Of a stretch of 64,000 nucleotides of DNA, positions 5,309 through 58,353 are shown one piece after another. The number at the start of each line of letters is the position of its first letter. Positions within the stretch are counted from its first letter, which is position 1. Source of the DNA: Anthoceros angustus (Eukaryota > Plantae > Anthocerotophyta); the NCBI GenBank assembly GCA_010909165.1, contig VJWM01000126.1:124001-188000 (forward strand). The letters are read 5' to 3'. The translations under genes were made by a program, and so were the position numbers. The notes beneath the pieces were generated by a model that saw only the letters and a program-made list of their open reading frames with translations, had not been told where the DNA came from and made no database searches.

Positions 5309-8300
5309 TTAAGCGTTTGGCCTGGAAAGGCTTCCAGAGACCCCTGAAGTCTTCAGTTTCGCATTCACACTTCGGAAGTCAACCAAATCCTCAAAAAGTT
5401 TGTCTGTAGGCTTGTCCTGCCCGGCTGGCTGCTGTGCTGGTGGGCCCTGAGCACCAAGACCATCTTGCAAAGACAAACTATGCGTCCTGCTTGTGATGTC
5501 CGCCACCTGTGGGAAAGAGGGAGATCTCTGATAAGGGTCAGAGTTTAGAGTGGATTGCTGCTGCTGCTGCTGGAAGTACTGCTGCCTTAGGGAGTGCTGG
5601 CCTGGTGGTGGCGGAATTGGGGAGACAACATTGTTAGGAACCACACTTTTCCCATACAGCAGTGCACGCTGCTGTTGATTCATGGGCTGCTGAGCCTGTT
5701 GCTGGTTTAATAGCTGCGGACTTCCGCTCCAAGCTGCATCACCTGAGTATCCACTAGGAGGAGAAAGTGGACTAGACCATGGTGCTGCATACCCTGCAGA
5801 AGGCAGCTGGCCAGTTGCTCCCTGATAATGTTGCAGAGTTTGCTGTGCCTGCTGCTGCTGTTGATACTGAGCATAGGTATATTTAGGCTGAGGCACTTGA
5901 CCGACAACTCCTCCATTTGAGTAAGTGTACTGCTGCTGTGGAGGAGATGACCCATATACCCCAGCCTGAGGTTGGGGAACACCCTCAGGCTGAGAGACAG
6001 CCTGAAAAGGAGCTGTTGCAAAGGGGTTCACAGATTGCTGCTGCCCGCTAGACAGCGGCACAAGAGCAGTGGATGCTGGTTGAGAGGAACCAAGAGATGA
6101 GTGAACATAGTTTGGGTTCACCAAGGGCTGAGGCTGTACTGTCTGCGGTTGGGTATCCTGGTAAGCATCCCCACTCAGTAAATCTACCGTCATCTCCCGC
6201 TGGCTTGGAGTAGAAGACAATTTCCTTGGTGGAGGAGGCGGGGGAAGAGCAAGCTGAGGAGATGCCTTGCTTGGTTCAGAAATCTGGCTCTGGGATCTGA
6301 AACGTGAAGGTCTACAACACCAGGGTCACAACCCATCAGTCTACACAATCAACAGCACTTGCAAAACTATACCCACAAACACAGGCAATCCAGTGATGGC
6401 CAACAGAAAGAACAGGAAAAACCTGTGTGCAAGCTGCTGAAAATCATCCTCTGCCTCCTCTTCTTCATGATCAAACTGGCGTCCATGAGGAGCAGGTGGA
6501 GCTGTTGCATTTGGAGAATCCCGAGGTAAAGGAGACCCTGACGCTAAAGCATCATGCTTAGCTATGACACGTTGCAGGTCATCATTTAAAGCTAGGCCCC
6601 TGCGAAGCAACTCCTCATCTCTGCAGCAAACCATCCCAGCATTCACCTGAGTTCAGGAAGATGCTCAATCGTTTATCCAAAAGCTCCCAGGGAGACCCGA
6701 TTAACTGAATTGCATTACTCACGATGTGGTGCTAACAAGGTGCTCCACCCGCCGCTGAGAAACACGACACTGCTCCAGAAGCTCAACAATAACCTCCTCC
6801 TTCACAGCCTGCAAAGCAGAAGGCATGTACTTGTTTAGTGGCTACACTGACTTCCAACACTTTGTCACTTCTAGGAGTAGACTTGCTGACCTCTTTACTT
6901 GGTGGGTCTATAGCATTTAACATCTCGCTAAGCAAATCGACCCCACCCTGAGCTGTTTCAATGTCTGATAAGCTGCAGTCATGAACCATCGTCACGAAGA
7001 CGGCCATTTATACCCAAAAAGCCAGAGATTGTAGCCAATGAAAACATTAGATTATGTCCTTGGTGGCTACAACTAAGGATGAATGCCTTACTTCATGGTT
7101 GTCTCTGTAGTGGCCTGTCGAGCTGCTTCCACCCTTTGCGGACCGTATCCTGGAGGATTATATGCAGTTATTGGCTGGGTCTGTGGGGGAGTGAAAATGG
7201 GAACAGCTGCTTCTGCTGCTCTTTGTGGGAATTCGACACCAAATCGCTGCAGATTGTGGAAACATTGTGTTTTAGTGGACGAACAGGTTACGAAATTCAA
7301 AATATAAATAGAATGTGGGATTCACATGGACGTACCCTCAATTCATCATAAGCCAGGTAGTATTGAGGATATCGACCTCCTGGACCTCCAAAAGCTTCCT
7401 GCCAAGCGTCTACCAAGACCAGGATTTTATCTCTCACCTGCATGTCCGTCTGCAAAAGAAAAATGCAGTTCAGCATCACGGTGATGCCATCAAACGGCCA
7501 ACAAAGTCAAGCCTTCAGAAAGCTGAGGAACTAACCTTCTTCTTCACAATCTTGACCATCTCATGCAACACATCTCTTTCTGCCACTTGCTGATGTACGA
7601 TATCGGTGCAGTTTTTTATCAGAGTTTCCAACACCTGACAAATCCAAAGGGGACAAACAACCTCAACTATTTCCTAAAAGGTGCACAACGGCTACAGCAC
7701 AGAGGAAAGGAAATATCATGCTACGTGCAAGACACTTGCATCCCGCAAACTGCTCAGGGGCTTCAGCCCTCATGTATAAGCAGCTCCCGTACTCCAGGTT
7801 CACTTACAGTCAGAGCAAGCAGTTGCACTTTCGGGTTCTTGCTCCCCAGGCGTTTCTTCACTGCCTTGATCACATCTCTTGCTTGCCTGCCCAGGCAAAG
7901 GAAGACAACATCAACCAGTGCAAAATACCGCTGCTCGAAACTGCTTTCTACAGAGGTTCATCAGCAGGCGACAACAAAAACACTCACTCGCTCGAACTTG
8001 CAAGCCATATCACATTTTGCTTCGCATTCACAGGCTACCCGTTCCTCACCTGTGCCAAAGGTAGGAGGGAGACAAGAAGCGCAGTGACAGGTTCGCATAA
8101 CCACAGCACGCTGCATACTGCCAGAACTCATTCAAGCACAAGATCCAGTTTACGGTCGGCAAAGTAAAAGTTGCTCGAATGAGAAGTACAAATACTACAC
8201 AGCACAACTGCGTCTCCGCACGACGGCTACATAGTACCACCCCAAATACATCCACAAACAAAGATTCCTCCAGGCCCGCTCCAACGGCCAACAACTCAGG

Positions 8301-9980: not shown

Positions 9981-11092
9981 ACGGTGAAGTACCAGCTGCT
10001 TGACTGTTACTCTCCCGTCCCTCCGACTTATTTGCAATTTTGTAGCTAGTACTCTCCCTCATTAATTATCCACTTATTTGCAATTTTCTAGCTAGTACTT
10101 TCCCTTATTAATTATCACTATCTCTTTCTGAACTTATCAAACATTCACATCTCAACTATTTCCTAACTAGTACTCCCCCTACATCAACTAATACTTGCAT
10201 CAACTAGTACCCTAATGATTTATCACTATCAGGTCGGATACGACTCATGAAGTGTTCCCTTGCCGTCCGACTTCTTTCTATCCTCTGTACTTACACCAAA
10301 TAAAAGTGTCTTTTCATCTTTCACTATCTGGTCCGTCCGGTCTCTTACTGTTTCTTCCTATATAATGAAGTGTTCCGTCATTCATTTATGTATCCCTATT
10401 CGAACACTCAGACTTATTCTTGTATTGTGTATAAAACACATACGCTTAGACTTATTCTTGTATTATGTACAAAACATATACCCAATTATCATCATCATTC
10501 AAGGTGGTCTTAAGCTTGAATTCGCATGAGGTGATCCAATGTACCCACTCATCAATTCACAAGTCTAGTATTCTCATCAACTTTCCCGATTCCTTGCATC
10601 CAGAGCTAGCGTAACAACCACAAAGTTTTTTTTGGCGTGCACTATATAGCCAAGGTTCTTATTATACATGTGCTAGTTAGTAGCCAATAATACTAATTGA
10701 GTTATTAGTCTTATTAAGTGAAAATAATATGTCTAAAAAGTGACCAGAATACAACGGTGGCATGGCCTACCCGCATGTATGGAATGTCCAGGGGCTCCGG
10801 ACACGCGTTTCTTTCCAGATTCCTTGTGACAGTTGGATTCCCGAACACATGGGTGCCGGCTGTTGGAAGCGCTGAGTACAATCCGTGAGAAACGACGGGT
10901 CTCTTTCCCTGGTGAGGCCGTCAGCAGTCACGCTTCTGAGGTGACCTGACTCTTGACCGGGGACGACTTGACCACTGGGTAGCTTGCAAACTACGCTTGG
11001 AACCCCTGTCCGTCAGCTTTAAGAACCGGATGAACAACCCGTTCGAGCCTCGGGATGCTCCGGGCTAGAGGAGGCAAAGAGGCTGCTTGTCC

Positions 11093-11710
11093 ATGGCTGA
11101 TGGAGTGATTGTGTTGCTGCTGCTCTGTTTGCTTTCGTGTTCGGCAGCCTCTGCTAACAGACTTCACTTACCAAGAGGCAAGGAGCTTGTTCCAGCTTCC
11201 GGCCAACCAAGCGACGGGAATTTTAGGGAATCTTCTATTTCCATATCCAATCCTGTTGAGAACCATGACCATGACGAGTTCCAGCACCCCGTGCCGGGCC
11301 ACACTACATGTCACGTCTGTGAGCGAGAATCAGTAGGTGAAAGCAAGTGCAGGGGAGTGGCTCACAAGTTGTTGCGCAGGTTGTTGCGAGGTGAGAAAAA
11401 GGTTGCTCCTGATGGATCATGCACAGGCTTTTTCAGCTGCCTTCTTGTCCTGTCCCGCTTTCGATCCTCGTTTACGAGGCATTGCGAGATCAGGATATGT
11501 TTCATTTCAGAAGCAAAAGGTAAACTGACGATGAAGTAGACTTTGATTTTTCTGACCAGGCGTTTGTATTCGCCTGGTTCAGATAATGGTGAGCAACCCG
11601 GTGTCTCGAAGGAGGAAGGATTAGGGCTGAAAAGAAAGCTAGCGGTCGTGGCTAAGTTAGCAAGTTGGAAACCAGGTTTGCCTCCGTCTCCCCCTTCAGG
11701 TCACGACTGA
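11093..11710 (+). CDS. Putative small secreted peptide precursor (144 aa, 3 exons including a 9-nt micro-exon) with an IDA/PIP-like C-terminal motif
   Basis: Model: exon1 11093-11390, intron gtgaga..tttcag (120 nt), exon2 11511-11519, intron gtaaac..ctgac..ttcag (63 nt), exon3 11583-11710; 435 nt in frame. Signal peptide MADGVIVLLLLCLLSCSAASA; basic sites RRLLR and KRKL; terminus LASWKPGLPPSPPSGHD*. Confidence 0.65.
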
Positions 11711-12467
11711 TCAACGGGGCAGCCGAAGGAAGTACTACGAACAGATCTCCCAGAAGTTTGTGAAAAAGGAGGTTACCTGTCTCGAAGCCTCTCGACATCC
11801 ACATCGGCTGGCCGAGGGCGTCGGGAAGTTCTGCTCGAGAACTCTGCAACAGAAACCATCTAAGATGCGCTAAATGAAGGAGAATCACAAAGGAGGTCAC
11901 ACACGACGAGGAGAAAGACAAGAGTCAACAAGAAAGATTTTCGGGAGGCGTAGCTAGGATGCAGACACAAAGTCTGCACCAACAGTAGAACGCTATCCCA
12001 GACACCTCTAGGCCGGGTGAAATAGGCCACACCGGATCGAGGCCAGTGTGCCCTTTGGATTGCTGGCCACAAAACTCAACAGATCAAAGCGACAAAGCGT
12101 GACAGATCAGGACGAAAACAAGGCGCACACTCAACCATACGGCCATACAAGACTGTAGAGAACCTGCTTGAGAGGAAAGATAGTAGAGACATCTTGCCTC
12201 TTCAAAGGGACCCGAAACCTTGTTCTTGGCCTCCGATGGACCAGGGTGATGAGGCGAACAATCACACCGGTCTTGGGGAGGCGCTCGCTGTCTACACTAC
12301 TCTTCCTCCGCTCGCAAATGACAGAGCGTGGTAAAAAGGACCTGAACAACAAACGAGAGAAAGCACGTAGACGACAGACACGGACAGTGAGAAGTAGGAA
12401 GTAGGGCGGGGCTTTTCAATCAAACCCTTCGAGCAGGGATGCCAATGTTAGGGCAAGCCGAAGCTGA

Positions 12468-14117
12468 TTAGGTCGCTTCGACTGTGTCTTGGATTTCTAA
12501 CAGCATTTGGGTTCTCAAGGGCGCAAACGAACGACGATGGATGTCACATGGACCATGTTTTCTCATTGCTGCTATGTGGGCACGGGTTCCATATCCCTTG
12601 TTCTCCTTGAACCCATACACGGGCCATTCCCTGCACATCATGACACACCTCGGGTAAGATTTCAGATGGAGCTTGTGTTGTGAGAAAGAGACAGCATGAA
12701 GATGATGGCGCGTCAGGGACTGGTGTGGTGTACTTGTCATATGCTTCCATGAGACGATCTCTGGTGACTTTGGCCAAAATGGAAGCTGCGGCTATCACAT
12801 AACTTTCTGCGTCCCCCTGTGTATGTGGAGCACCAGACGGTCACGGAATGCAGTGGGTGGGGCGGGGGGGGAGGTGGGGAAAGCGGAAAGTGCACACACA
12901 TTTCTGCTTCAGATGCTGTAAGGGAGAGACTTACTCGAACGACAGGTCGTGCTTTATCGGTGCTTAGACCATCAGGTAGTCTTGGTCCATCCACAAGCAC
13001 GTAGTCCGGTACAAGTGAACCGTTTTCACCTGAGCTCAGTTGCTCCACGCATTGAGCCATAGCTTGCATTGTTGCCTGGGGACAAGCCCAAGCGACGGAT
13101 GAGCCCAAGGACTTAGTACGAAAAGTTAGGACCTGCTCCTCATACCTGCAGGATGTTGATAGCGTCAATCGTTGCTCTGTCAACGATCTTCACCTGCCAG
13201 ACGAGGGCTTGAAATGTCAACAACATTACAAACAAGACACAGGGGCATATGGAAGCTGGTTGAACAGGTGTTGGCAACCTACAGCGTAGCTCACACCTGG
13301 GGCGGAGATGATTTCTGTGTACAACTCCTCTCTCTCCTTCTCCGTAAGCTTCTTGCTGTCGTTGATACCTGGACTTGCACACAAGCTTCTATCACCACTT
13401 CGAACAACGTGCAACTGAGCAAGACAGAAGGTTTGAAGCAGATGGGGGGGCATGAAGTGGGGTGACCAAGAGGAACAAGACCTGCCTTGAATCATGACAT
13501 GGGAAGGGATGACACATGCAGCTGCAACCACTGGTCCAGCAAGCGGGCCTCGTCCTGCCTCGTCCACTCCTGCCACATGCTTGAACCCTCGCTGCCACAA
13601 CTCAGCCTGCACCACATTGCATTCTCCAACATCAGGCACGCAGCTTCAGCCTGACATGTTCAAGGATGTCACAAGCGAAGTGTAGAAGCCTGTCATCCTA
13701 TGCAACAGAAGTTGCACCTCAAGCGATCTGCTAGGAAGAAGTTTCCCTTTCCGCACAGCCATGTCCCCGGATGCTGCCACATCCTGCTCCACTCCTTCAC
13801 TCCTCTTAGGGCTCCGTCTCTTCCTACACGAGGGTCCAGAGTGTTCAGTCTGCACTTCACCTTTCTCTTCCCGGGCTTTCCTTTCCCGAGTGCCACTAGA
13901 CAAAGCAGCTGCCGTGCTCTTAGCCTTCACGGCTGCTTCCAAATGCAGGCATTGATACAAAACAGGGTGTCAGAGCAGCAGGAACACAACCACGAAAACC
14001 GCCCAAAAATTTCACGTCGTTCACATCTGAAATTGTCTTACGCAGAACAGGCTGGAGAGTTGAGGAGGAGGCCAGCCTCGCGGACCGCCGGACCGCAACT
14101 GCTGCAGCTGCTGCCAT
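12468..14117 (-). CDS. rnhB: Bacterial-type ribonuclease HII with N-terminal extension (probably organelle-targeted); about 8 exons; start could lie further upstream
   Basis: Spliced motifs: [104 protein letters not shown]-terminus [19 protein letters not shown]. Confidence 0.92.
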
Positions 14118-14532
14118 TGAGTCAATGCTCCCCAGTGCTTCAACCCCACTCTGCAAATCCTGCTCAAAATGTTTTTCCGCATTGCCGTCCTCGCGTGCCC
14201 TACCTAGCTTCTCCCTCAATTTGAGGTTCGACCTGCATGAGTTTCAAATTTCAAACCGTAGCCGCGTAAGTAGCCATTGAAGTTCTTCTTTCTTTTTTTG
14301 TGGAAATCTTCCATCGTAGACTTCCCCGAGCACACCGCACATTAGCGGATGTGGGATGCTGAACTTGGCTTCACAGGCATTCTCTCATATGCAGATGCAA
14401 AGATGCAATCGTGCGATGCAAACGGTTTCGTTTCCTTGAATAGGAAGAGAGAAAATTTGCGGTGTTGGTGTAGCTTGTCGAGAGAGACCCTTGACGGAAA
14501 GCCCCTGGCGTCATTGCTGTTGGTAAAGCAAG

Positions 14533-31759: not shown

Positions 31760-34135
31760 GAGAGGCTGATGACCTTGGATACTCCCCTCGGCTCGGGAGG
31801 AATTAACTCCCGACATGAACGAATCTGGGTCAAGTTTCCTTCAAAGACTCCTATTCCGGAGAATGTTGCCTTCTTTTTTCACGAGGCAGTGTAACTCTTT
31901 TGCTGTCAAGACTGGAGCGGCAAGATCGGAGTGGCACTAGAGTAGCTCAAGTGCTTGCTTACGAACTTTGACTCTTAGTTCCTCTCCAGTCTTAATGCAC
32001 GAGCTAGGCAATAGCTTCAGGCCCGGCCGCATTGCTCCCAGAGCATCGATCGCCCACAAACGCAGAACTCATCACCTCCATGGGAATCGACGGAATGGGC
32101 CCAGGGGACCTCGATCAACATCCTCTCTGACGCGTAGGGCGATCCTGGATCCATCTTATTGTTGCCTCCTGGCCGTGCTGCTCCAAACCGCGCTTTGCCT
32201 CGCAGCGATGGACCCTGGTGACCAAGCGGCTTTGTAGGCAGTGCGGGCCAGTGTCGCACGAGGTAAGCACTTGAATTCATATAAGCACTTCCTCGACCAA
32301 CAACCAAGCAAACAAATCTAATACGCAGATATATAGGTGCAACTAATCGGCCTGAGGTGCCGAGGGACGGACCATTCCCCTCATGAGTGCGAGCATGCAT
32401 TCGGAGGAGTCAAGGGTAAGGAGCCGTGCCCAGCCGTGGAGGTACGCACAATGAAGCGTGTTGGGAGAAGCATCCGAATTGCGGCTCACGGGTTATCGAA
32501 AGCAAAGAACCCGGCCAATGCATCTCACAACCTCATCCACAAAATCAGCGAAGAGCAAAGGCACCGTGGAGGAGGTACCGGCAAAGTCCCGTGGACTCAT
32601 TCCAACACGCATTCCAGCACTCATTCCAGCACTCGCATCTCAACGGGAGAAGGCGAGTTTGGAGGGCAAGGAGAGTGAGCACGTAGAGGAAGCGTGCAAG
32701 CCATCTGAGCCACAGCCACATGAGTGGTTAACAAGCGTCGAATTGAAGAGCAATCAACAGCGTCAGCTAAAGGAGTTGTTGGAGGCATCACGACATGTGT
32801 TTGCTTTCACGCTTGCAGAGATGGGGAAGTACACCAAAGGGAAGTTCCACATAGAACTAATCAAGGATGAACCAGTGTTCCGCAGGAGGCACATGCTCAA
32901 TAACGCAAGAAGAAAATGGCGAGCAACCGGCTAGGGGGGAGAGTAGTCCACATGACAGGCGCATGAGGATGCTGAAGACAACCCTCCACTCATGGACAAG
33001 GTTCATAACCTCTGGACGACATTCCCGAAGGAGATTGGTTTTGTGCACAATGCGCTATATGAGGTGCGACGTAGTTCTACTAATGATAATGTTTTGACTT
33101 AGAGTCTCACATTATCGTGGGGATTAGTTGCACCTATATATTTATATTAGATTTGTTTGCTTGGTTGTTGGTCGAGGAAGTGCTTATATGAATTCAAGCA
33201 CTCGGCATGCCATGCCGTGATACTAATCTCTGCACTTGGGTTTAGTGTTTGATTAGCATTAATTAATTTAAGTACTTATGTTTAAGTAAGTAATTAGTGT
33301 CAATTAATCTAAGATGCTTATGTTAGTTAAGCATTGATTAGTATTAATTAATCTAAGGTGCTTATGTTAATTAAGCATGGTTAATTAAGTATGGTGATTA
33401 GTGTTAATTAAACATGGTTAGTAATAGCTAAGTGAATAAGCTCAAGTAATATGCTTTGGCATATTCCTTGCATATTATAGTGTATTCTTAGGATATTTCC
33501 GGCATACGCTGATGCCAATAGGATATCTTAGGAATATGCCGATGCTAAGGGCTAGTATATATAGACCCTTCCATTGAGGATAAGCTCACATCATAGCTTG
33601 TCCTCTAGATATGCAATGCAAGGGTGTTGTGAGGAGGCCAAAGTTATGACTCCGAGAGCGATGTGTGAGAAATTTGGGTGTTGTTCTCGTGGGGAGAGTG
33701 TGTTTGTACCACGATTGCGAGCTACTCCCTCCTGTTGTTACAAGCTATGATCTCGTGTGTGTACGCTAGATAGGCGTGCTAGGATTGATAGGCCGTGTTA
33801 GGCTTAGTGTGCTAGGCGATGCTAGGCGATGCTAGGCCAATGCTTAATTAACACAAGCACCTTAGATTAGTTAACACTAATCAATGCTTAACTAACATAA
33901 GCATGTTAGATTAATTAACACTAATTACTTACTTAAAGATAAGTAATTAAATTAATTAATGCTAATCAAACACTAAACCCAAGTGCAAAGATTAATATCA
34001 CACAGCATGACACCAGCCTCATCAACCCTAACAATAAGCTCATTAACTAGGAGGGCGACGACCCTTGCACCTATACCGCGCCATGGGAAGGAGTGTTGTG
34101 AATGACGGACGCGGGGGGAGGGGGATCCGACGAGT
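31760..34135 (+). pseudogene. 5' remnant of a paralogous LRR-VIII-1 receptor kinase (leader, signal peptide, LRRNT), split by an LTR insertion
   Basis: CCLLAVLLQTALCLAAMDPGDQAAL*AVRAS [insert] LINPNNKLIN*EGDDPCTYTAPWEGVL aligns with CCLLALLLQAALCLAATDPGDLAALQAVKASLTDPNNRLANWVGDDPCNAPWEGVF of the gene at 55.2 kb. Upstream 31830-31920 matches 54870-54985. Confidence 0.9.
32252..34012 (-). mobile_element. Rearranged Ty3/gypsy LTR insertion (TG...CA) with 4-bp TSD CCAG
   Basis: ccag|tgtcgc at 32248-32257 and catgaca|ccag at 34006-34016. The ends are reverse complements of the solo LTR at 47942-48510. Internal pol-like fragment HVFAFTLAEMGKYTKGKFHIELIKDEPVFRRRH (ORF 32458-32934). Confidence 0.85.
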
Positions 34136-34139
34136 GAGC

Positions 34140-37100
34140 CACGAAGCGCTGACAAGTGAGTTCTTGGAGCTCTCCAAGAACTTAGCGGCTCCAAGGCTTC
34201 CCTTATGGCCTCCCGAGATGCCGCAAAGGCTCGGCTGGAAGGGCTGGGAGACGAGACGGCCCAGCGAGCAGGAGAGCACGCCCGACTGCTGGAGCACCAG
34301 TGGAGGCGGGAGTACTGGGTCCTATGGTCTCATGTGGAAGAAGCCATCCAGCAGGTGGACTCAGACTTCTCCTACTACCACACGGAGCTCCTGAATGCCG
34401 CAAACGTGGTGCACCAGCCGGCTGAGGCGATAGGGCCCCCAGAGGAGTCGGAGGAGGCCGTGGGAGAAGAAGGGCTGGGGGAGAATGCGGTTACAGGGAA
34501 CCTAGGCGCTCTGTTTGGGGACAAGAGCAGTGGCGAGGCTGAGCCGTCGGAGGAGGAGCGGCACCTGGATGGTCGAGCCGGACCAGGAACGTCAGCCCCT
34601 GTGGAACACAAGGTGTTCTCTCCAGACCCTGTACCGGATTGGATGGCCTAGAGGGGAGTGGTCCGGTGAGGAGGGAGGAGCCGGAGGTAAGGGGAAGACC
34701 CATGGTGCGGGTGGTGAGGTCCGCTCCTGGGGAAGGGCGGACCTAGAGGTCCTCCCGGGGTTAAGGACGGACCTAGTGGCGTCTGATGAACCGCCCTAGC
34801 GGACTCCTCCGGTCCCTCCTCCCACCAGACTAGTGGACGGGGGACCCACTGGGGCGCAGGGGGTGCAATGCCCAAACTCGAGGTCATAGCGGAATCGTGA
34901 GGAAGACCTGATGATAGCAATGTCGTCACACTCTCAGGAGTGAGGCCCAACCAAGGACGAGGTAAGACCCGGGCCCTTGCTGGAATGCAGGGGTCAAGGA
35001 TAATCGTCAGGCGCCCCCCGCTGTGGCTAGGGATTGGCACGCGGGAAGTCACCAAGTCAGAGAGGCCCACCAAGACATAAGTAGCCACGCGTAAGGATCT
35101 GGCATCCCTCTCGCATGTGTGGGTAGCTGGCAGTAGGGCCAGCTCTCGGGTTGTAATAAAGGCACTGCCTTAGAGGCAGTATAAGAGGGGGTTCGCTGCC
35201 CCTACAATGTGATTTTCCTTTTGGGGTTGATGCCGTGTTGTGCATACTGACTTCTGTGAGCCAAGTGCTAATATGTTGCCCGAGTCACCGAAAGGGCGGA
35301 CTACTCCGGAGTTGATAATCCATCTCGTGACGAACCCCCCCAACACGTGGAGGTGATTGCAGGTGCTGAGGAACTACGACCGTTGCTCCTCAAGGGCGGG
35401 ACGCATGTGACAAGTGGACCGGAGCGGACAAGGGAAGTCAGCCAACCAGCAGAGGGTGCGGAGAGCCCGGACTGGCTGGACCGCGCGGACGTGGATACGG
35501 AGGTGCTACGGCCCGACATTTCATTGGAGTGCGAGCCCACACTACGATGGACTGCGAAGTGCAAGAGCAAGCGAAGAGAGAAGAGCGGAAGGGAAGTGCT
35601 CCAAAAGAGCGGACACGAGGATGTGAACGATTCCTTAAACGTTCGGCGATACCGAGCCTATACGGTAGAATTTGATCATGATATGGAACATGAGGGGGAG
35701 AGGTGAGCGGAGAGCGCGAAGTAGAGAGATCGGGCGGTGGTACGGTTGGGCCCGGGGCTGTAATCTCTGGCCGTTGACATTGCGAAGGGTGGTTCGTACC
35801 CCTGTTCAATTCGTTGGAAGGGTCGGAAGGTACCTTGAGCACCGCTTTCTTGCACAATGCCCGTCGCCAGGTGATTGCCGTAGAGCCGGATCACGAATCG
35901 CGTTGTACCATGGGTCCCACGCTTGAACGCTTATCGGGCGGATCGTAAGTGGATCCGGGTCCCATGCATGCCCACTCGCTGCTGGGGAGAGTCCGGGCAG
36001 CCGACTAACGATAGCAACCACTAGTTAGGATCGTAAGGATCGGGTCCTATGGTCTCATGTGGAAGAAGCCATCCAAGCTGGGACTCGAGACTACTACCTA
36101 CACAGCTCCCCGAATGCCGCAAACGTGGTGCACCTGGCCGAGGCGATAGGGCCCCAGAGGAGCTCTGAGGAGGCCGTGGGAGAAGGGCTGGGGAGAATGC
36201 GGTTACGAACCTAGGCGCCTGCTTGGGGACAAGAGAAGCATGGCGAGCTGGCCGTCGGGCACGGATGGTCGAGCGGACCAGGTCGTGACCCACGCGGAAC
36301 ACAAGGTGTTCTCTCCAGACCCTGTACCGGATTGGATGGCCTAGAGGGGAGTGGTCCGGTGAGGAGGGAGGAGCCGGAGGTAAGGGGAAGACCCATGGTG
36401 CGGGGTGGTGAGGTCCGTTCCCAGGGGGAAGGGCCGGACCTAGAGGTCTGGCCTCCGGAGTTAAGGACGGACCTAGTGGCGTCTGATGAACCGCCCTAGC
36501 GGACTCCTCCGGTCCCTCCTCCCACCAGACTAGTGGACGGGGGACCCACTGGGGCGCAGGGGGTGCAATGCCCAAACTCGAGGTCATAGCGGAATCGTGA
36601 GGAAGACCATTGATGATAGCTTGTCGGCGCACCTCGAGTGAGGCCCAACCAAGGACGAGGTAAGACCCGCCTTCGGAATGCAGGGGTCAAGGATAATCAG
36701 TTGTCGCCCGCGCTGTGGCTGAGATTGGGCGCCAAAGGCGGGAAGTCACCAAGTCACAGTGAGGCCCACCAAGACATAAGTAGCCACGCGTAAGGATCCG
36801 CATCCTCTCTGTGTGTAGGCGTGGGGCCAGCCTCGGGTTGTAATAAAGGCACCGCCTTAGAGGCGGATAAGAGGGGTTCGCCCTACAATGTGATTTTCCT
36901 TTGGGGTTGATGCCGTGTTGTGCATAGCAGGAGCCAAGTGCTAATATGTTGCCCGAGTCACCGAAAGGGCGGACTACTCCGGAGTTGATAATCCATCCGT
37001 GACGAACCCCCCCAACACGTGGAGGTGATTGCAGCCGAGGAACTACGACTGCTGCTCCTCAAGGGCGGGACGCATGTGACAAGTGGACCGGAGCGGACAA

Positions 37101-37895
37101 GGGAAGTGACCAACCCGGGGTGCGGAGAGCCGGTGGGCCGTGATGATACGGAGGTGCTCTGACCATTCAGTGCGAGCCCACACTACGATGGACCAAGTGC
37201 AAGAGCAAGCGAAGAGAGAAGAGCGGAAGGGAAGTGCTCCAAAAGAGCGGACACGAGGATGTGAACGATTCCTTAAACGTTAAAGCGTCGAGCCTACGGT
37301 AGAATTTGATCATGATATGGAACATGAGGGGGAGAGGTGAGCGGAGAGCGCGAAGTAGAGAGATCGGGCGGTGGTACGGTTGGGCCCGGGGCTGTAATCT
37401 CTGGCCGTTGACATTGCGAAGGGTGGTTCGTACCCCTGTTCAATTCGTTGGAAGGGTCGGAAGGTACCTTGAGCACCGTTTCTTGCACAATGCCTGTGTC
37501 GCTAGGTGATTGCCGTAGTAGAGCCGGATCACGAATCGCGTTGTACCATGGGTCCGGACGCTTGAACGCTTATCGGGCGGATCGTAAGTGGATCTGGGGT
37601 CCGATGCATGCCCACTCTCGTCAGTGGGGGAGAGTCCGGCGGTGGGTGCCGACTAACGATAGCAGCCTAGACTAGTTAGGATCGTAAGGGGATCGGGGTC
37701 CGCTACCCACTAACGTAATTGGGGAAGCCCAGTAGTGGGGTTCGGCTAACGATAGCGGCCTAGATTAGTTAGGAGCGCGGAGTAGGTAAGCAATAAGCGA
37801 ACAGAGCGAACCATTCCCTTGGGATCGAACCTTATACTACACGATATGGGATTAGTGTGCACCCGGCTGGACCATCGGCGAAAGTGTGTCCACAC
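34140..37895 (+). mobile_element. Unclassified TE segment (long-LTR-like) with a 148-aa ORF (34205-34651) and a ~1.7-kb tandem duplication
   Basis: 34318-36038 is repeated at 36042-37688. The 3' part (cccttgggatcgaaccttatactacacg..gtgtgcac) resembles gypsy LTR ends. It interrupts the RLK pseudogene. Confidence 0.45.
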
Positions 37896-37899
37896 TAGG

Positions 37900-40210
37900 A
37901 CACTATACTAGTAAGGGCACTTAATCCATCATCAGGCTCATAGCGAACGATTACAATTAGGTATCGTTTCACGTTTCTGTTTAAGAAAGCTCTGCATGTT
38001 CACATGCTCTATTCTGATCAATTGAAGCACCAGGCTTAATCTCTAATCGATTACCACAGAAAATTGTCATGGTATCAGAGCGATCAGCCTTCGATTTGAC
38101 ATAAACAATCATGATCTATACATTACAAAGCCATGCTAGGCTCTTAAAGGCGACAACGCCTACTAAGAAAAACAAATCAAATTAACCAACAACTTGATTG
38201 GCAATGAGATTGCAGAGAAACAATTTATCTCAAAGAAGCCAATAAGAACCTATGGATTTGTAGCCGCATAAGAACATGCTCAGTCTTGCTCCTCATAGTA
38301 GAGGAACTATATCTGCAAAGTCACTTAGAACCCTAAGAATATGATTGGACCTAGATTCAAGTGTCATTCCTATTTACACAAGAAGAACCACAAAACCTAC
38401 AATGATCAGGGAATTCACATCATCGTTTGATGTCCCTTCACCTAACTCACCTCAACACATCAGTGATAAGGTCCTTACCCACCTAGATATAATCCGCAGG
38501 CAACACAACCTGTTCTCACAACCTCCGTCATTAGAAATTTAGGCTCTACAAAACTCCATAATTCAGAAACCGTTCTTGAGCAAACACATCTAAACCTGAA
38601 AGAACACAAAAAACATACAGAGTTTTAATTACAATGCACCTAGACACAAGTTGCCTCCTAAGACACATAGCCATCCGTCTTTAGACACCAAACCAATATA
38701 ATATGTGTTCCTTTGGTATCTGCCTCTCCACGATAGACCGTTTCAACAGCCAACAACATAAATTTATTGGCTTCGATGGAGACATCGATGGCTTCGACGA
38801 TGATAACGGTGGCTCCTCCTCCGGCACAATAGCAGCCCAAGGCACAGCCGTCTGTGTGCGCACACAGACCAGAGTACGGCGACCTCCATCTTGGCCTTCG
38901 TCCTCAGCCCATTGGGCGCACACTATTGAACCTCCATCCTGGCCTTCGTCCGGTGAAAACACTTCTCCGCTCGTAAGGCAAAGGGTCCTCAAGGATTGGA
39001 ACGGGTGCCCTCTCTCAGCCATACACTTCAACTATCGCGCAAGATGTGGATAATGAGTACCGTGGCACACACAACCATCAACGGAATGCTAGGCCCGACA
39101 GGCACACACATCATACAAATGCAGGTACTATACAAAGGTATTCCCCATCTAATTGGAGGGACCCTAAAATTTAGCCTATTGTTTATCTGCTGCTATTGAC
39201 CAATTTTTATTTGCTAATTATTGTGAGGCCATCACATGTCCCAAAAGGGAAAATTGGAAGATTGCTATCAAATCAAAACTAAACTCTCTTAGGCCTAACA
39301 ACCTTGGACTCTTCCTACTTTACCTCTAGACAGAAAATTAGTCGAATCTTTATAAGTCGCAATTAGCTTGATCTTAAAAGTGAATATTTAAGATCCAGCT
39401 AAATGCAGATGGTAGCATAGAGAGATACAAGGCTAGGCTAGTGGCAAAGGGATACTCACAGCATATGGTTTTGACTACGATGAGACCTTCAATCCGGTAC
39501 TCAAGATCACATCCTTAAGAACCCTTATGGCGTTAGCTTCTCACCACGATTATAAGCTAGTGCAATTAGATATAAAAACTGCTTTCTCGTATGGCGATCT
39601 TGACCATGACATATATATGGAAATACTTGAGGGCATACATATTAAAAATAAAGCAAAATACACTACTTGCAAACAATTAAGCAAAGCATACAAACTTAAA
39701 CAAAGCGCCATGAAAAAGGAATTCCAAACTAGGTATTACTCGTAAGTCCTTAGACTTTACTAGGTTTGACTCATAAAGTAACATCTATATTTATAGATCC
39801 TATAATCACTTTATCATCCTAGGAGTAGATACGTCGATGATATTGTCCTTATATCCAACTCTAATGATGTGTTAGGAGAAACTAGGTCGATGCTTTCAAA
39901 AAAGTTTGTCATGACCACATACATGTAGGGATCTTTCTTATTACCTAGGGATTCAGGTTCTTAGACATAAAAATACTAGAAGTATATTCATTCATCAATC
40001 AAAATATATTCAAGAAATTTTAACCAAGTATAAAATGCTAGAAACCAAGCCTATATCTATACCAATGAAGGTGAATCTTAAACTCAGCACAGCCGACGAG
40101 TAACAGGGTCAGGACTGAAATATATATCCATGAGCTCCCCACTCCTCAGCCATAGCCTGGAGCCTCATGTACCTTATGGTTTGTACAAGATCTCACTTGG
40201 CACTTTCAGT
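37900..40210 (+). mobile_element. Degenerate Ty1/copia retrotransposon (LTR 3' end, PBS, RT fragment)
   Basis: ..tgtca|TGGTATCAGAGC (tRNA-iMet PBS) at 38070-38081. RT motifs RYKARLVAKGYSQ, DYDETFNPVLKITSLRTL, QLDIKTAF.YGDLDHDIYME and YVDDIV at ~39420-39850. Confidence 0.9.
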
Positions 40211-40219
40211 GGAAGCTTT

Positions 40220-40468
40220 GCGTGCATGCTTACCTTGTTATTTCCTGGCTTGGATCAATAAGACTTGTGTTTCTTCTGCTGCTGTTGTTGTTGTGTGCTG
40301 GACGATGATCTAACGTGGGCCATGGAAGGCCAGTTTGTGGACAGCAGGATAAGCATGGATCCTTGTGGAAAGGAAGATTCCATTTTGGTACTCTTTGAAG
40401 ACATCCGCCCTGACAACCTAGCTACAAGCTTATTTTTAATGTATGTACGGAGAAGGGAGGGAAGCTAC
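40220..40468 (+). pseudogene. Remnant of the RLK 3' UTR/flank; continues at 44819-44950 after the CACTA insertion
   Basis: gcatgcttac..cctggcttg..ggtactctttgaagacat..ccctgaca matches 58450-58700. ctcgtcacctcctcggg..aaggttcatcaccactagt..caaaggttctt..ctagatgctaca matches 58745-58858. Confidence 0.85.
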
Positions 40469-43400
40469 CACTACTACAATACGAGCCCTAATATGATGGT
40501 GGCCTAATGACGTGCACGCCCCATGACATTACTACGTCATTACAACATGACGCTGGGGAAAAGCAATGATGCGAAGATATTCTACGGTAATTACTCCAAA
40601 GTACTCATAATGATGCAGGTTCTTCACGGCATTATTTGTACCTGAAGACGGGCTATTGACCGCTGATCTCCAATATTTTCCACCATTTACCGGTACTCTC
40701 CCACATTTTAGCCGGTACTCTTTGATGGCAACCAACCCGTACTCTCCGGTAGCCTCAACTAGCTACACTTAGAGCTTACTATGAAGAATTGTGCCAATTG
40801 CAACCACATGCCTCAAGCTGGTCCACCTGCACTCAGAGCTTGCTATGGAGAACTATGCCCGTTGGACTCAACCTAGTAAATGAGGAGACGATGGCTTGAG
40901 CTGCAAACAGAGGAGGGGTTTGCTCTTAATTGCTACCCTATTTTGGATGTCTCTCACCCACGCGTCCTGTCCAGCAAGATCTCGGCTTGCAGGATCGGTT
41001 TTTCAAATGGTGGGCTTGGCGTTGCCTTAAGCTCCTCCTTGATCTTGATTGACTTCTCCTAGGCTGTTGCTTGTAATTGTTGGAGCATGGGTTCATCTCT
41101 TTCTGGGCTTCGCTTCTGCAAATGTATCAGGCTTGTACGCTATTGATTAGCAATATGTGAACGTTGGGTTGGGCTTGGGAGTGTGTTGCCTTGGCTCGTT
41201 GTCTCATGTCTGGCATTGGGCGGCAACTAATGCAGAGAGAATACTATTGCGTTGGTGAGTTCTTACAAAGATGAGAACACAAGATCGCTAATCGCCCTCG
41301 TGGACGAGGTGGCCAGATGTGGGAGCTAGGTTAGTGTGCTTCACGCTTTGTTGTTGCCCTTCTTTTTCCAGTGAATGATTTAACCTACCCTACTCCATAC
41401 TCCTCTGGCTATTGTAGCCTAGCACTACTAGGAAAATGGGTCTTTTACTAGAGGCTATTTTTTAGAGCGAAGAGAGATTTCAGGCTAGTTTCATTTTACA
41501 ACGGGTGTTCATGGTTCAAGTATTATTTTCACGTATAGCCATTCGCTTTACTACAGAAGTTCTGGTATTCTACTATGAGGGGGATTTAGCCACGGGTTTT
41601 CCTGATGACGTGGTGTAACGAAAGCGCTTTTACAACGAGGGCTCTTCTGGGTTACAACACAAAACGATTTTAGCTAGGACTTTTCAGAATTAGATGTTCT
41701 GTTACTACGACTACCGTTGTAAACCTGCTCAAGTGTGGTTCACAATGATTTCCTTTACAACGGATCATGGTCTGGTTACAACGGTGCGTGATTTACAATG
41801 GGACGTTAAGTTTTACAATGCGGGCGTTTACAACACAGGCATACAACAACAAGCCGGTTACTAAGGAGGACAGTAGTTTACAACGAGGGTCAAGGGTATT
41901 GGGACGATTTATGTGCATGTCGTTTAGGGTTTGAGTTTAGGGTTACATGTGAGTGGAATGAGAGATGATGACTTTATTAGGAGACATTACACTCTGGCTC
42001 CTCGTTTGCATCGGTCACCCAAAACCATTTCTCTAATGCCCATAACCAATAGGGCATTACATGGTTCTTTTAATCCTCACTCTACAGGTTGATGCGGATG
42101 CGTGAGGGTCCCCGTTTGCGACGCGCGACCTCTCCCTCTCCTATTACACACTCAATTCCGTTGTCCTCAATGCCCATAGCCTTCTCCAATTCTACCACAA
42201 GAAGGTGGTAACTGTGGAAATCCTCCGCCTTCCATCCACCAGCCTTCCCTTCCGGAACATCCGTCCACTGGGCAAACCTTTGCACCTCCTTATGCACGCG
42301 CTCTAGCTTGTCAAGGTGCTTATACACCAACCGCATCAGACGCCACAGATACTTGTGAGAAAGGGAGTTAGGCTTGTCAATTAAGATTGACAATTCTTTC
42401 TGGTCGTCCTCGAAAATCGGAATCCCATGTCCAGTATTGAAAGCCATAGCTTGGCCGCTTCCCGCTCTTCACAACCGTACCTCAGCTACAAGCTTGCTCC
42501 AGACCAAGTGTCGACAAAGTGTTATCAGTCCAGAGTTGCGAATTGCAGCAGCAAAATCAAAAGGCCAACAAAGCAGCGCGCACAAACTTCAATGGCAAAC
42601 CAGACAACTGCCTACAACCTGTAGGAAATAGCTCAGATCGCAAAGCGCATGAGGAATCGTTCAGCAAGGCAAATCAGAAACCAATGGAGTGCCTTGGAGG
42701 CGGTGCCTCCTTATATTGCCAACTGGGGCAAATGGATGGCCGCCACATGTCGGAAGGAATCGAGTTCAAATTGCCACATGCTAAAGTGCATCGGCCGGAA
42801 GTCATGTTGCGAAAATGACAAGTCCCAAAACCCGACATCAACTCGAGTGGTCAATCGGAATCCTTGACGAAATCTCTGACAAAATGACAATGTGTCCTTG
42901 ACGAAATCTCTGACAAAATGACAATGTGTCCTTGACGAAATCTCTGACAGAATGAAACTGTGTCCGACTACCCATCACATGTATAAGTAGCACATGGGTT
43001 TAGGTTTCTATCAAAGTCTATGTGCCTCTGATACTTAACCATGGAACCTTATAACCATGGTTTAAGAAGCCCGATACCCAAGGACACATCGATGCGAGTC
43101 CTTGGGTGTCGGATACTTCAACCCACTGGGTTTACAAAGTGTCCTTGGGTTTCGAAATCCGGGTTTATAGGTTAACCTGGGTTTTTTTCTTTGTTTCGAA
43201 ACCCAAGGACAATTTCATTCAAAGTAATATGTCCTTGGGATTTGAGGCCGGAGTCTCGGAAAACCTTGGTTTACCATATTAGGGTTTACTGAAACCTAAT
43301 AACCATGGTTTAAGAAGACCGATACCCAAGGACACATCGATGCGAGTCCTTGGGTGTCGGATACTTCAACCCATTGGGTTTACAAAGTGTCCTTGGGTTT

Positions 43401-44818
43401 CGAAACCCGGGTTAACTATTTCGAAACCCAAGGACACTTTCATTCAAAGTAATATGTCCTTGGGGTTTGGGGCCGGGGTCTCGGAACCCAAGGAAGTAAT
43501 TGGCTATAAATGGTTGGAAATGCAGGCAGTAATTACGTGCAGCCAGAGGCCGTGTTCACATTACAAGAGCACCATGCAAGCGATTTGGACTTGGAATCCT
43601 AGCGGTAAAGTTGCGCGGGATAGAACCTACCGTGTTCAAAAAAAAAAAAGTGTCATGAAATCATCTCCAGCAGTTGAGTAAGCCGGGTTTACAGCGCGGG
43701 TGTTGCCAATAGGGTTACAGCACGGGTGTTGCCCTAAAACAAATCGATCTATAGATTGATTTGTTTTCGTGCTATGCAGATGTGCTCTTCACCTTCCCTC
43801 ACGTTGGTTTTCATGAGCAAGGTAAGCATTGATTTGAACATACTCGAACCTTTTCATCACGTGTTGGGCAACCTGCTTGTGCCTTCTCGGTGTATAGGAT
43901 TTCTCTTGTGCACTACAGTGACATCCATCCGCTACATTCTTATAGGTAAGGAGGGCCTTGTGATGAGAGAGCCAAGCCAAGCCCTCCACTGCCCCTCAAT
44001 GACATGGAGTTGAATAGGGGATGAGGTTGGTCTTTTTTTCTCATGAGGTTTTGCTGCTTTATTGTGTCTACAATCTTTGAGCTAGCATCCTAGCAATGTT
44101 CAAACCTAGCAAGCTTATACATTTGTTTCCATCTTTTTTATTCTATGACATATATATTGAATGAAGGGACTGGCGGCATGGATCATGAGTAAGTATGCTA
44201 CACTTGGTTTATGATTCATTGTTGCTGCTCAGCTTGCTTTCGAACCTTACAAATTGAACTAAAAGTTGTGCTTGAGTGATTCAAGCTGGAGGAGTCTGCC
44301 GGGTAGTTCTCTTTCGTGAAAATGCAACGAGGCTTTACAAAACCCTTACATTGTAGGCAGAGGTGCGAGTAGACTAGGTTTGTATATAATTGATATAGTA
44401 TAACATAATTATAAACTATGATTGAGATCATAATTTCGAGGTCCGGTTCGGGATTTTGGGAGGTCCGGGTTTTCGAGATTTTTGGGTACGGATGGAAGAG
44501 GTACACATCACATGTTCCGTTGAATTGTTCTGGCCCCGTTTCACCTATTCCGTTGGATGGAACTGTCTCCATCCCGTTTCGTCCCGGTTGTCCTACTCGG
44601 GATTTGCAAACTTGGTACCGGCCACTGGGGAGGCAAAGGGGACCGGTTAGCACCTCGCATAAATAACCCCTATTTGTGTCGGGTTCATAATGACGCAAAT
44701 TATGATGCCCATACAAGAATCCCGGTATAATAAGTGGGCGCTAGACATGATTTTTGCGTCATACAACACGTCATATTAGAATAAAACTCGTCGTATTAGA
44801 ACATGTTTTGTAGTAGTG
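40469..44818. mobile_element. Non-autonomous CACTA (En/Spm) DNA transposon with 3-bp TSD TAC; nested second CACTA left end at 41423
   Basis: tac|CACTACTACAATAC ... GTTTTGTAGTAGTG|tac. The flanks rejoin into sequence homologous to 58725-58760. Short subterminal repeats (ttacaac). No recognisable transposase. Confidence 0.88.
42862..43490. repeat. 34-bp repeat x3 (42862-42950) and a ~250-bp direct duplication rich in hairpins (cccaaggacac..gtccttggg)
   Basis: Directly visible; copies start at ~43052 and ~43300. Confidence 0.85.
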
Positions 44819-44949
44819 TACACTGTTTCTCGTCACCTCCTCGGGAGCACTAGTGCTTCTATGGTGCGTCCAAGTGAAATTTTGAAGGTTCATCACCACT
44901 AGTTTACTCTTCAAAGGTTCTTGAACCTTGTATCACCTAGATGCTACAA

Positions 44950-45722
44950 GGCAAGGAGAACCATGAGAGTCAACAAGAAGATTAAAAGGATCAAGAAGCA
45001 TTTTCTGGAAGTGTAGGAAGGAGGCACGCATGCATGAAGACTGCACCAACGATTGAACGCTACTATCCCAGACACCTTTAGGCCGAGTGAAATAGGAAGC
45101 ATTGGATCGAGGCCAGTGCGCACTTCGAATTGCTGGCCATGAAGCTCACCAGACTAGAACGACAAACCTTACGCTATCAATGCGAAAACAAAATGCACAA
45201 GTCATTCTCACGAATGTCTCTGACCATGAGAGATTGTACAGAACCAGCTTGGGAAAAAAGCTACAAACCAACTTGGGAGGAATGTTAGAAACCAGCTTAG
45301 GAGGAGAGCTAGAAAGGGTCTCGAGACCATGTTCTTGGCCTTTTCTGGACTACGGCGATGAGGTGACCAGGGTGATCGGTGTGCACTCTCACTCTGATTC
45401 TTGGTGAGGCGCTCGCTCCCTACTCTTCCTCCGAAACACTCATTTCCAAACAACAAAGAATTGCTAATATGTGTCGTATATAGAAGGACCTAAATAACAA
45501 GCACCATTAGAAAGCACAAAAGGATAGAGACCGCACGGAGCTTTGAATCACAAGAGGATAGAGACCTCCAGTTTTGAGAAGTCGCACGGAGCTTTGAACC
45601 AGGAACCCTAAAACTGGGAGGCCAATTGCAATGTTAGGGAGCACCAAAGCTGATTACATTGCACCTTGGATTTCTATTAGCATTTCAGTTCTCAAGGGAA
45701 CGAAGAATGACAATGAATGTTA
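44950..45722 (-). pseudogene. Remnant copy of the RNase HII last codons and 3' region
   Basis: Colinear similarity with 11905-12545, e.g. ctatcccagacacct.taggccg.gtgaaatagg..ggatcgaggccagtg and cttggatttcta..agcattt..gttctcaaggg. Confidence 0.88.
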
Positions 45723-54650: not shown

Positions 54651-55192
54651 TGTGTCCATCCTAGAAATTCAGCCTTGTACTTCTTGCGAAATTGGCGGAA
54701 TGTGTCCATCTTGGAAGCAAGTTGAGGAAGATTGATGGGCCGTCTCCATCTTGAAAGCAAGGTGAATTAGTGACAAGTGAGCAGTAGTATTGCACACATC
54801 CCTCTCGAAACCATTCCGAGAAAAAGACTGGTGACCATCCTGGGCAAGACAACTTCTGAAAGTCTTCGAAGCAAGTTGCCCTGGTCAAGCTCTCGAGCCT
54901 CCAATTCCGGAGCGTCCGCCTTCCATTTTCACAAACCCGGGCAGCTGCCAACTTCCATGCATGTTTTTCGGGAAGACTGGAGAGCGACTGCACTGGGACT
55001 GGACTGGCGGCAGGGCCGCGTACACGGACTCTGACTCACATCTCCGAGTCCCACTCGCAGTCCCGATCCACGAACTGGGCGGCGGCTGCAACCCATCCGC
55101 ACTGCACCCAGAGCGGAGCGGCGGGGAGGCGATCCTTTGCCTGCAGGAAAGCGGAGAGGACATCAGTCCATGGATAAAACCCGTCCACAGGA

Positions 55193-58100: not shown

Positions 58101-58353
58101 GATGGCACGCCTGGCTCTGGCTTGCTGCCAGGATAACCCTGACGGGAGGCCGACCATTCTGGAGGTGGTGCGGGATCTGGAGGACATTTGGCGCACCATG
58201 CCCTGGGCTGCTGCAGAACATGTCAGCGCCGACCCCGCCTTGCACAACTACTACTACAGGCCGGCTCCTTATCATGGGGCTCATGGGACCGACTCCGAGC
58301 CATCCACCGACCTTCTTCTCAGCGGCACCGTGGTGGATGTTGCTCCTCGATAA
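55193..58353 (+). CDS. Intronless LRR receptor-like Ser/Thr kinase, subfamily LRR-VIII-1 (At1g06840-like); 1-nt frameshift at ~55397 as assembled
   Basis: Signal peptide and LRRNT lie in ORF 55193-55468; the rest lies in ORF 54961-58353: NVMWNEITG, LLLVNGNNMSGPLPDELGNLPGLNRIQIDQN, HMNNNSL, HILLDNN, RLKSPGF, WEPGPRL, FGPYE, a TM helix, and kinase motifs GQGGYG, VAIK, HRDIKASN, DFGLS, GTPGYLDPEY, SDVYSFG. The true start is ATG 55193 or 55229. Confidence 0.93.

Follow-up and report, generated by a model that had tools for sequence, protein, structure and literature searches.

In the window analysed here, namely the whole 64-kb stretch of Anthoceros angustus DNA, a gene of two exons lies on the plus strand at 11093-11390 and 11583-11710, and with its one intron of 192 nt it is real, transcribed and spliced. 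Its frame begins with an ATG at 11093 and is open until a GT donor at 11391, 99 residues in all, so that the coding part of exon 1 (11093..11390) holds aa 1-99 and the first base of codon 100. The single intron (11391..11582, GT..AG) ends with the acceptor AG at 11581-11582, the intron phase is kept, and Asp100 is formed from the split codon G|AT. The coding part of exon 2 (11583..11710) then supplies the last two bases of codon 100 and, after Asp100, 41 more residues (aa 101-141) with the end KPGLPPSPPSGHD, followed by the stop at 11708-11710. The main product thus comes from one intron and 141 codons, with 298 + 128 nt of coding sequence.

Several other features are found in the same window. 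A bacterial-type RNase HII gene, with relatives in PF01351, occupies 12468-14220 on the minus strand and converges on the two-exon gene, which stands 758 bp from the 3' end of this neighbour (ORFs 12468-13639). On the other side, at 5309-6646 on the minus strand, there are exons of a TOM1-like/GAT-domain gene (a weak PF03127 match, below the Pfam cutoff) and then a long Gln-rich C-terminal exon. A Pro-rich frame occurs twice in a GC-rich segment, at 34607-34777 and 36300-36470 on the minus strand; its two copies agree in every one of about 35 residues, and they fit a tandem duplication at 31760-45722. Moreover, 43 kb from the two-exon gene, an uninterrupted ORF of 1130 aa at 54961-58353 on the plus strand encodes an LRR receptor kinase (Pfam LRR and kinase); among the solved relatives of this kinase, GSO1, FLS2 and MIK2 come out best, before HAESA/HSL1.

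Transcripts and splicing of the two-exon gene

The RNA evidence consists of the contigs of one public run from one study, and in such contigs rare isoforms are dropped. The run is 100% identical to the window, with 84% of the sampled words of 11000-11900 present, and its contigs were placed on 10500-12500 (2001 letters). The RNA label of the run is itself a guess; that the run is RNA or cDNA follows from the spliced joint described below together with the zero coverage of the upstream intergenic DNA, where no contig falls at 10500-11102. Coverage begins at 11107, which is 14 nt after the ATG, and the start codon itself lies outside the coverage. One contig extends over 11107-11390, its end falling exactly at the donor; another one, of 58 nt, joins 11390 directly to 11583, by which 192 nt with GT..AG ends are skipped; and a third one, of 1410 nt, starts at 11581, runs past the stop and through 12500, and continues for 490 letters beyond. 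The contigs show that the gene is transcribed, where it is spliced and which frame is read through the joint.

An intron-retaining form is present as well, since one contig runs unspliced over 11361-11610. The mean depth is 26.6 for the joint contig vs 11.4 for the unspliced contig, which suggests, these depths being contig means, that the spliced form dominates over the unspliced one. The unspliced form would encode a product of 148 aa ending in KGKLTMK, without the Pro-rich tail described below. As for the transcribed region past the stop (11711..12500, plus strand), it is known from the 1410-nt contig; it could be 3' UTR, or else the place where the RNA overlaps the 3' end of the RNase HII-type gene that converges on it. 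This contig is unbroken from exon 2 (11581) into the last exon of the RNase HII gene, and the transcripts of the two genes may overlap at their 3' ends.

From the sequence, an earlier note had proposed two introns around a 9-nt micro-exon, AAGCAAAAG, at 11511..11519, and a product of 144 aa. In fact good splice signals are found for this model, for the single intron 11391-11582 and for an acceptor at 11559 alike, so the sequence alone cannot choose between the three options. The contigs point to the single intron of 192 nt: the donor at 11391 and the acceptor at 11582 are used, the micro-exon occurs as an exon in no contig of the run in spite of its good flanking signals, and no letters stand between the two sides of the joint. 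Because there is only the single intron, with the micro-exon unused and the frame kept, the product has 141 aa, and the length of 144 aa has to be given up together with the micro-exon. The CTGAC branch site that was pointed out in the same note is present at 11552-11556, 27 nt before the acceptor and within the 192-nt intron, where it is the likely branch site. It had also been considered that transcripts might use the acceptor at ~11559 and leave the C-terminal motif out of frame; no contig of the run uses this acceptor, and through the joint 11390>11583 the tail is in frame in the spliced RNA.

Layout of the predicted precursor

The N-terminus (aa 1-21, 11093..11155, plus strand) is predicted to be a signal peptide. 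It has a short polar head and a hydrophobic core of 12 residues with the h-region VIVLLLLCLLSC, the hydropathy reaching 3.8 over aa 4-13, and small residues are found at -3/-1, with ASA before N22; a helix at aa 3-17 is given by single-sequence AlphaFold2. By inspection this arrangement would be classic for a cleavable signal peptide, as expected of a secretion signal. It should be mentioned that the products of the two exons were searched and folded separately, and the predictions below are to be read for each exon product by itself.

The pro-region that follows has mostly low confidence in the AlphaFold2 prediction. A stretch rich in His and acidic residues is followed by C73, C76 and C86 (11264..11365, plus strand; pLDDT about 50-60; no Pfam family), which agrees with the CHVC..C motif beside His/acid residues described previously. 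With three Cys and seven His in the pro-region, the Cys do not make a closed disulfide set, their number being odd. Near the end of exon 1, just before the exon junction, RRLL at aa 95-98 (11375..11386, plus strand) matches by sequence the RxxL/RxLx motif of S1P/SBT6.1 type and sits in a predicted helix at aa 83-98. Motifs of this kind are cut by S1P/SBT6.1 and SBT3.5 in RALF23, CLEL6 and PROSCOOP12 (PMC13082318).

In exon 2 the prediction becomes more definite. A Lys-rich helix is predicted at aa 109-126 (11609..11662, plus strand; residues 9-26 of the exon-2 product, pLDDT about 80) with KRK at 116-118, and its hydrophobic moment reaches 0.5; the net charge of the exon-2 piece is +2. The basic sites that had been claimed for the pro-protein can thus be named as RRLL, of RxxL type, and KRK. 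The last part of the protein is a Pro/Ser-rich C-terminal 15-mer, SWKPGLPPSPPSGHD (aa 127-141, 11663..11707, plus strand), which is translated from the spliced frame, is predicted as coil, and may be taken as the candidate mature peptide.

Altogether the protein would follow the general layout of the precursors of post-translationally modified peptides, with a signal peptide, a non-conserved pro-region, few Cys, processing sites and a short C-terminal Pro-rich motif. These features are also found in many unrelated small secreted proteins. With moderate confidence, we consider the locus to be an expressed two-exon gene for a secreted pre-pro-protein of 141 aa that is built like such a precursor. 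More specifically, we infer secretion, processing, modification and any signalling role along the following lines. A signal peptide that is cleaved close to ASA|N (aa 21/22) would direct the protein into the secretory pathway, and the pro-region would be mostly unstructured; a subtilase would then cut at RRLL (aa 95-98), possibly also at KRK (aa 116-118), and free a C-terminal piece made of the Lys-rich helix and the Pro/Ser-rich tail. The SPP/LPP prolines of the tail would be typical substrates for hydroxylation and arabinosylation, and the C-terminal product might act outside the cell, in the apoplast.

The same layout is compatible with a secreted protein that is no hormone, either a protein of the apoplast or cell wall whose short end is Hyp-glycosylated like that of extensin or HypSys, or a cationic antimicrobial or membrane-active helix peptide (LKRKLAVVAKLASWK). 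The contiguous SPP/LPP prolines of the tail, the confidently predicted Lys-rich helix with its moment of up to 0.5, the charge of exon 2 and the three Cys and seven His of the pro-region all agree with this, and the nearest neighbours in the ESM Atlas feature search, a language-model comparison, are small unnamed streptophyte proteins, although their best value, 0.85, does not reach the level regarded as meaningful. However, one short Pro run without repeats makes neither an extensin nor an AGP, the hydrophobic moment is moderate, and Pfam and phmmer gave no homology to a known antimicrobial or cell-wall family, so we regard a non-hormone protein as rather unlikely.

Relatives, neighbour gene and coding evidence

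Searches with the gene returned little. In Pfam nothing was found for either exon piece at E up to 10, in Rfam nothing was found on 10000-13000 at E up to 1, and neither exon 1 nor the 55-aa ORF containing exon 2 had a match in metagenome scans. A word search with exon 1 yielded 2 candidates, none of which was scored. When exon 1 was compared by phmmer with 1.84 billion protein representatives, 3 matches were obtained with E of 1e-5 to 1e-6. These were rejected as chance, as they are proteins of 526-2088 aa with scores summed from 6-8 weak repeats, and each repeat matches 20-50 residues around the HP..G.TT.C..C stretch. Within the 64-kb window no paralogue was detected by regex, blastn or tblastn, and the sole tail-like matches were Pro-rich frames in the duplicated GC-rich segment and frames of the LRR-kinase gene; for example, non-terminal Pro-rich strings like the tail are LPPSPPS at 55940 and PLPPAPPSSPDH at two duplicated sites. 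Since the collections did not return even the gene itself, the blank searches show only that no called protein resembles it. With no relative detected in the collections searched, there is weak evidence that the gene is an orphan restricted to its lineage, and purifying selection finds no support, there being no relatives to compare.

The converging RNase HII-type gene was used to look for the same locus in other genomes. An exact look-up of its ORF in the window found nothing on record, and everything returned by a first word search with it came from mosses, algae or bacteria or lay on very short contigs. Mosses (Sphagnum) and a zygnematophyte alga have the best relatives of the RNase HII piece, as would fit a streptophyte that is no seed plant. 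In a second word search, with the last exon of the RNase HII gene, one Logan protein (P0124) was obtained with 71% identity, which lies on a 16-kb contig of SRR10916128 (locus L001). Only the RNase HII exon aligns there, with 79% nucleotide identity; the contig continues for 896 bp past the RNase HII gene, and no copy of exon 2 is recognisable in them. Past the RNase HII gene, L001:10244-11139 is AT-rich DNA instead of a gene, with 29% GC vs 43% for the locus. As this relative is distant and its contig ends early, the synteny comparison is nearly uninformative on conservation.

The evidence from codons is weak. GC1 is higher than GC2 in both exons and not in the intron, and in a crude codon test the proposed frame has the best score among the sense frames, where all scores are negative. 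After the splice, 42 further codons are open, which would not be a rare event by chance, with a probability of about 0.13 at equal codon use by our own calculation.

One may ask from these results whether the frame is a young or accidental ORF in a spliced RNA that has no protein function, be it a de novo candidate or a transcript that acts through the 3' overlap with RNase HII. The blank searches, the lack of a recognisable exon 2 in the 896 bp of L001, the contig that continues from exon 2 into the last exon of the neighbour, the weak codon evidence and the presence of the unspliced form are all in keeping with such an ORF. Against it stand the textbook signal peptide at the start, the frame that is open across a precisely used intron and the GC1 > GC2 pattern typical of coding sequence, and the silence of L001 counts for less given its 79% nucleotide identity in a conserved exon and the end of the contig 896 bp past the neighbour. 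We therefore consider an accidental ORF improbable, and keep the secreted pre-pro-protein as the preferred reading in the following part.

The C-terminal tail and known peptide hormones

The earlier note regarded the gene as a hidden secreted prepropeptide of an IDA/PIP-like family. The spliced gene, the signal-like N-terminus and the in-frame Pro-rich C-terminus in the contigs bear out the first half of this description; the membership in IDA or PIP does not hold up, as will be seen from the tail. For IDA, the mature 12-mer is of the type PIPPSxPSKRHN, with a central Pro and a terminal His-Asn; the His-Asn is crucial and docks on two arginines of the receptor, and the basic residues before it are crucial as well (PMC8462819). 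In our case the tail PGLPPSPPSGHD has a central Pro and a His, and ends with Asp, not Asn; moreover Ser-Gly stands at the positions of the basic pair before His-Asn. IDA is cut at YLPK|GVPIPP, where P2 is Pro and P4 is Tyr (PMC13082318), and in the context LASWK|PGLPP of our tail only the P1 Lys matches. The patterns of the other families are also lacking: there is no SPGxGH as in the CEP pattern xFRPTxPGxSPGxGH, neither the SGPS core nor the GxGH end of PIP/PIPL, no PxGPNP/DP core with an HN or HH end as in CLE, for which the regex scan of the window likewise found no motif, and of the features of RALF only RRLL, with no Tyr and no Cys after it.

The tail was then aligned without gaps, from the C-terminus, to the mature peptides of Table 1 in PMC8462819, which makes 16 comparisons, and the shuffle p values given here are uncorrected for this number. 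With AtIDA there are 4/12 identities (Pro1, Pro4, the central Pro7 and His11, with Asp for Asn), at an uncorrected p of 0.09 for identity and 0.02 for BLOSUM; with the bryophyte MpIDA1 there are 3/12, at 0.32 and 0.16. Other families come out about as well. For instance, CEP1 has 3/15 identities when anchored C-terminally (p 0.03, BLOSUM) and 4/15 with the final Asp dropped, PIPL3 has 2-3/11, and with the terminal Asp dropped 3/11 (p 0.04, BLOSUM), and MpCLE2 has 3/12 (p 0.05, BLOSUM), the identities of CLV3, CLE41, MpCLE1 and MpCLE2 to the tail being 2-3/12 in all. Once the 16 comparisons are allowed for, the likeness of the tail to IDA appears no better than chance. Because CEP1, PIPL3 and MpCLE2 are about as similar, and like strings occur elsewhere in the window, the resemblance is no more specific than any Pro/Ser-rich peptide with His as its last residue but one would show. 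Judged by its translated tail, the gene product is not a demonstrable member of IDA, PIP, CEP or CLE, and a Pro-rich tail with a penultimate His is insufficient to assign a hormone family.

It would accordingly be quite unlikely that the last 12-15 residues make up an IDA/PIP/CEP-superfamily ligand with hydroxylated prolines, in which His-Asp replaces His-Asn and which is recognised by an LRR-RLK XI of the HSL clade in this plant: such a ligand would have Pro1, Pro4, the penultimate His and Pro7, the central and hydroxylated one, in common with IDA, the signal peptide, pro-region and terminal motif would fit, and hornworts are among the bryophytes with HSL-clade receptors and IDA orthologues (PMC8462819), but the 4/12 identities (3/12 with MpIDA1) are equalled by other families, neither a terminal Asn, nor Lys or Arg before His, nor GxGH, nor Pro and Tyr at P2 and P4 is present, similar Pro-rich strings arise by chance in other frames of the window, and the precursor of 141 aa is about twice as long as that of IDA (77 aa). 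Moreover, the published hornwort IDA orthologues, found by the pattern PIPxSxPSKRHN, follow that pattern (PMC8462819), so a canonical IDA-type gene may already exist in Anthoceros angustus. According to published surveys, non-vascular plants lack PIP/PIPL (PMC13091385); CEP is described for seed plants, and the reported range of PIP is limited to vascular plants or to angiosperms (PMC8462819, PMC13091385).

A bolder version, for which we see only a slight chance, is that the gene founds a family of Hyp peptide ligands of the hornwort lineage, whose C-terminal peptide of 12-15 residues has His-Asp as its last two residues, or Gly-His once trimmed, and is recognised by an LRR-RLK XI of the HSL clade. 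If true, it would be a ligand type between the HN-ending IDA/CLE and the GH-ending CEP/PIP, the latter being thought to be seed- or vascular-only in origin. If relatives were found to have kept nothing but the tail, bryophytes, with their few LRR-RLK XI receptors, would gain a new candidate ligand. How pairs of peptide and receptor originated in early land plants is still an open matter. Annotation often overlooks genes for small secreted peptides, and the present gene, hidden and correctly spliced, has this general build in a non-flowering plant.

To sum up the comparison with known systems on the preferred reading of a secreted pre-pro-protein, the precursor can be set beside four kinds of peptides. 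HypSys of Solanaceae are made from precursors that start with a signal peptide and measure about 150 aa, and their Pro/Ser-rich peptides of the LPPxSP kind carry arabinosylated Hyp; HypSys are known only from a few flowering-plant families, and their peptides are internal, unlike the C-terminal tail here. The precursors processed by S1P/SBT6.1, such as RALF23 (138 aa, RRIL) and GLV1/CLEL6, are similar in length and have their site upstream of the C-terminal part as RRLL is here, where the cleavage would be putative; the differences are that YISY, the four-Cys RALF core and the DY sulfation motif are all absent in our protein. IDA/IDL, the ligands of HAESA/HSL2 with the mature peptide GVPIPPSAPSKRHN, likewise have a signal peptide, a variable pro-region and a C-terminal Pro/Ser-rich motif, and share Pro at 1, 4 and 7 and His at 11 of the C-terminally aligned 12-mer, whereas His-Asp, Ser-Gly and ASWK|P stand here in place of His-Asn, Lys-Arg and YLPK|G, in a precursor of 141 aa against 77 aa. 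CEP and PIP/PIPL, the ligands of CEPR and RLK7 with the GxGH end, differ by an SPGxGH or SGPS core that is not found here and by identities of only 3-4/15, yet they are likewise Pro-rich C-terminal peptides of 15 residues with an aromatic-basic-Pro start, WKP here vs FRP there, and with Gly-His near the end, so that our tail, with its terminal Asp trimmed, would end in GH.
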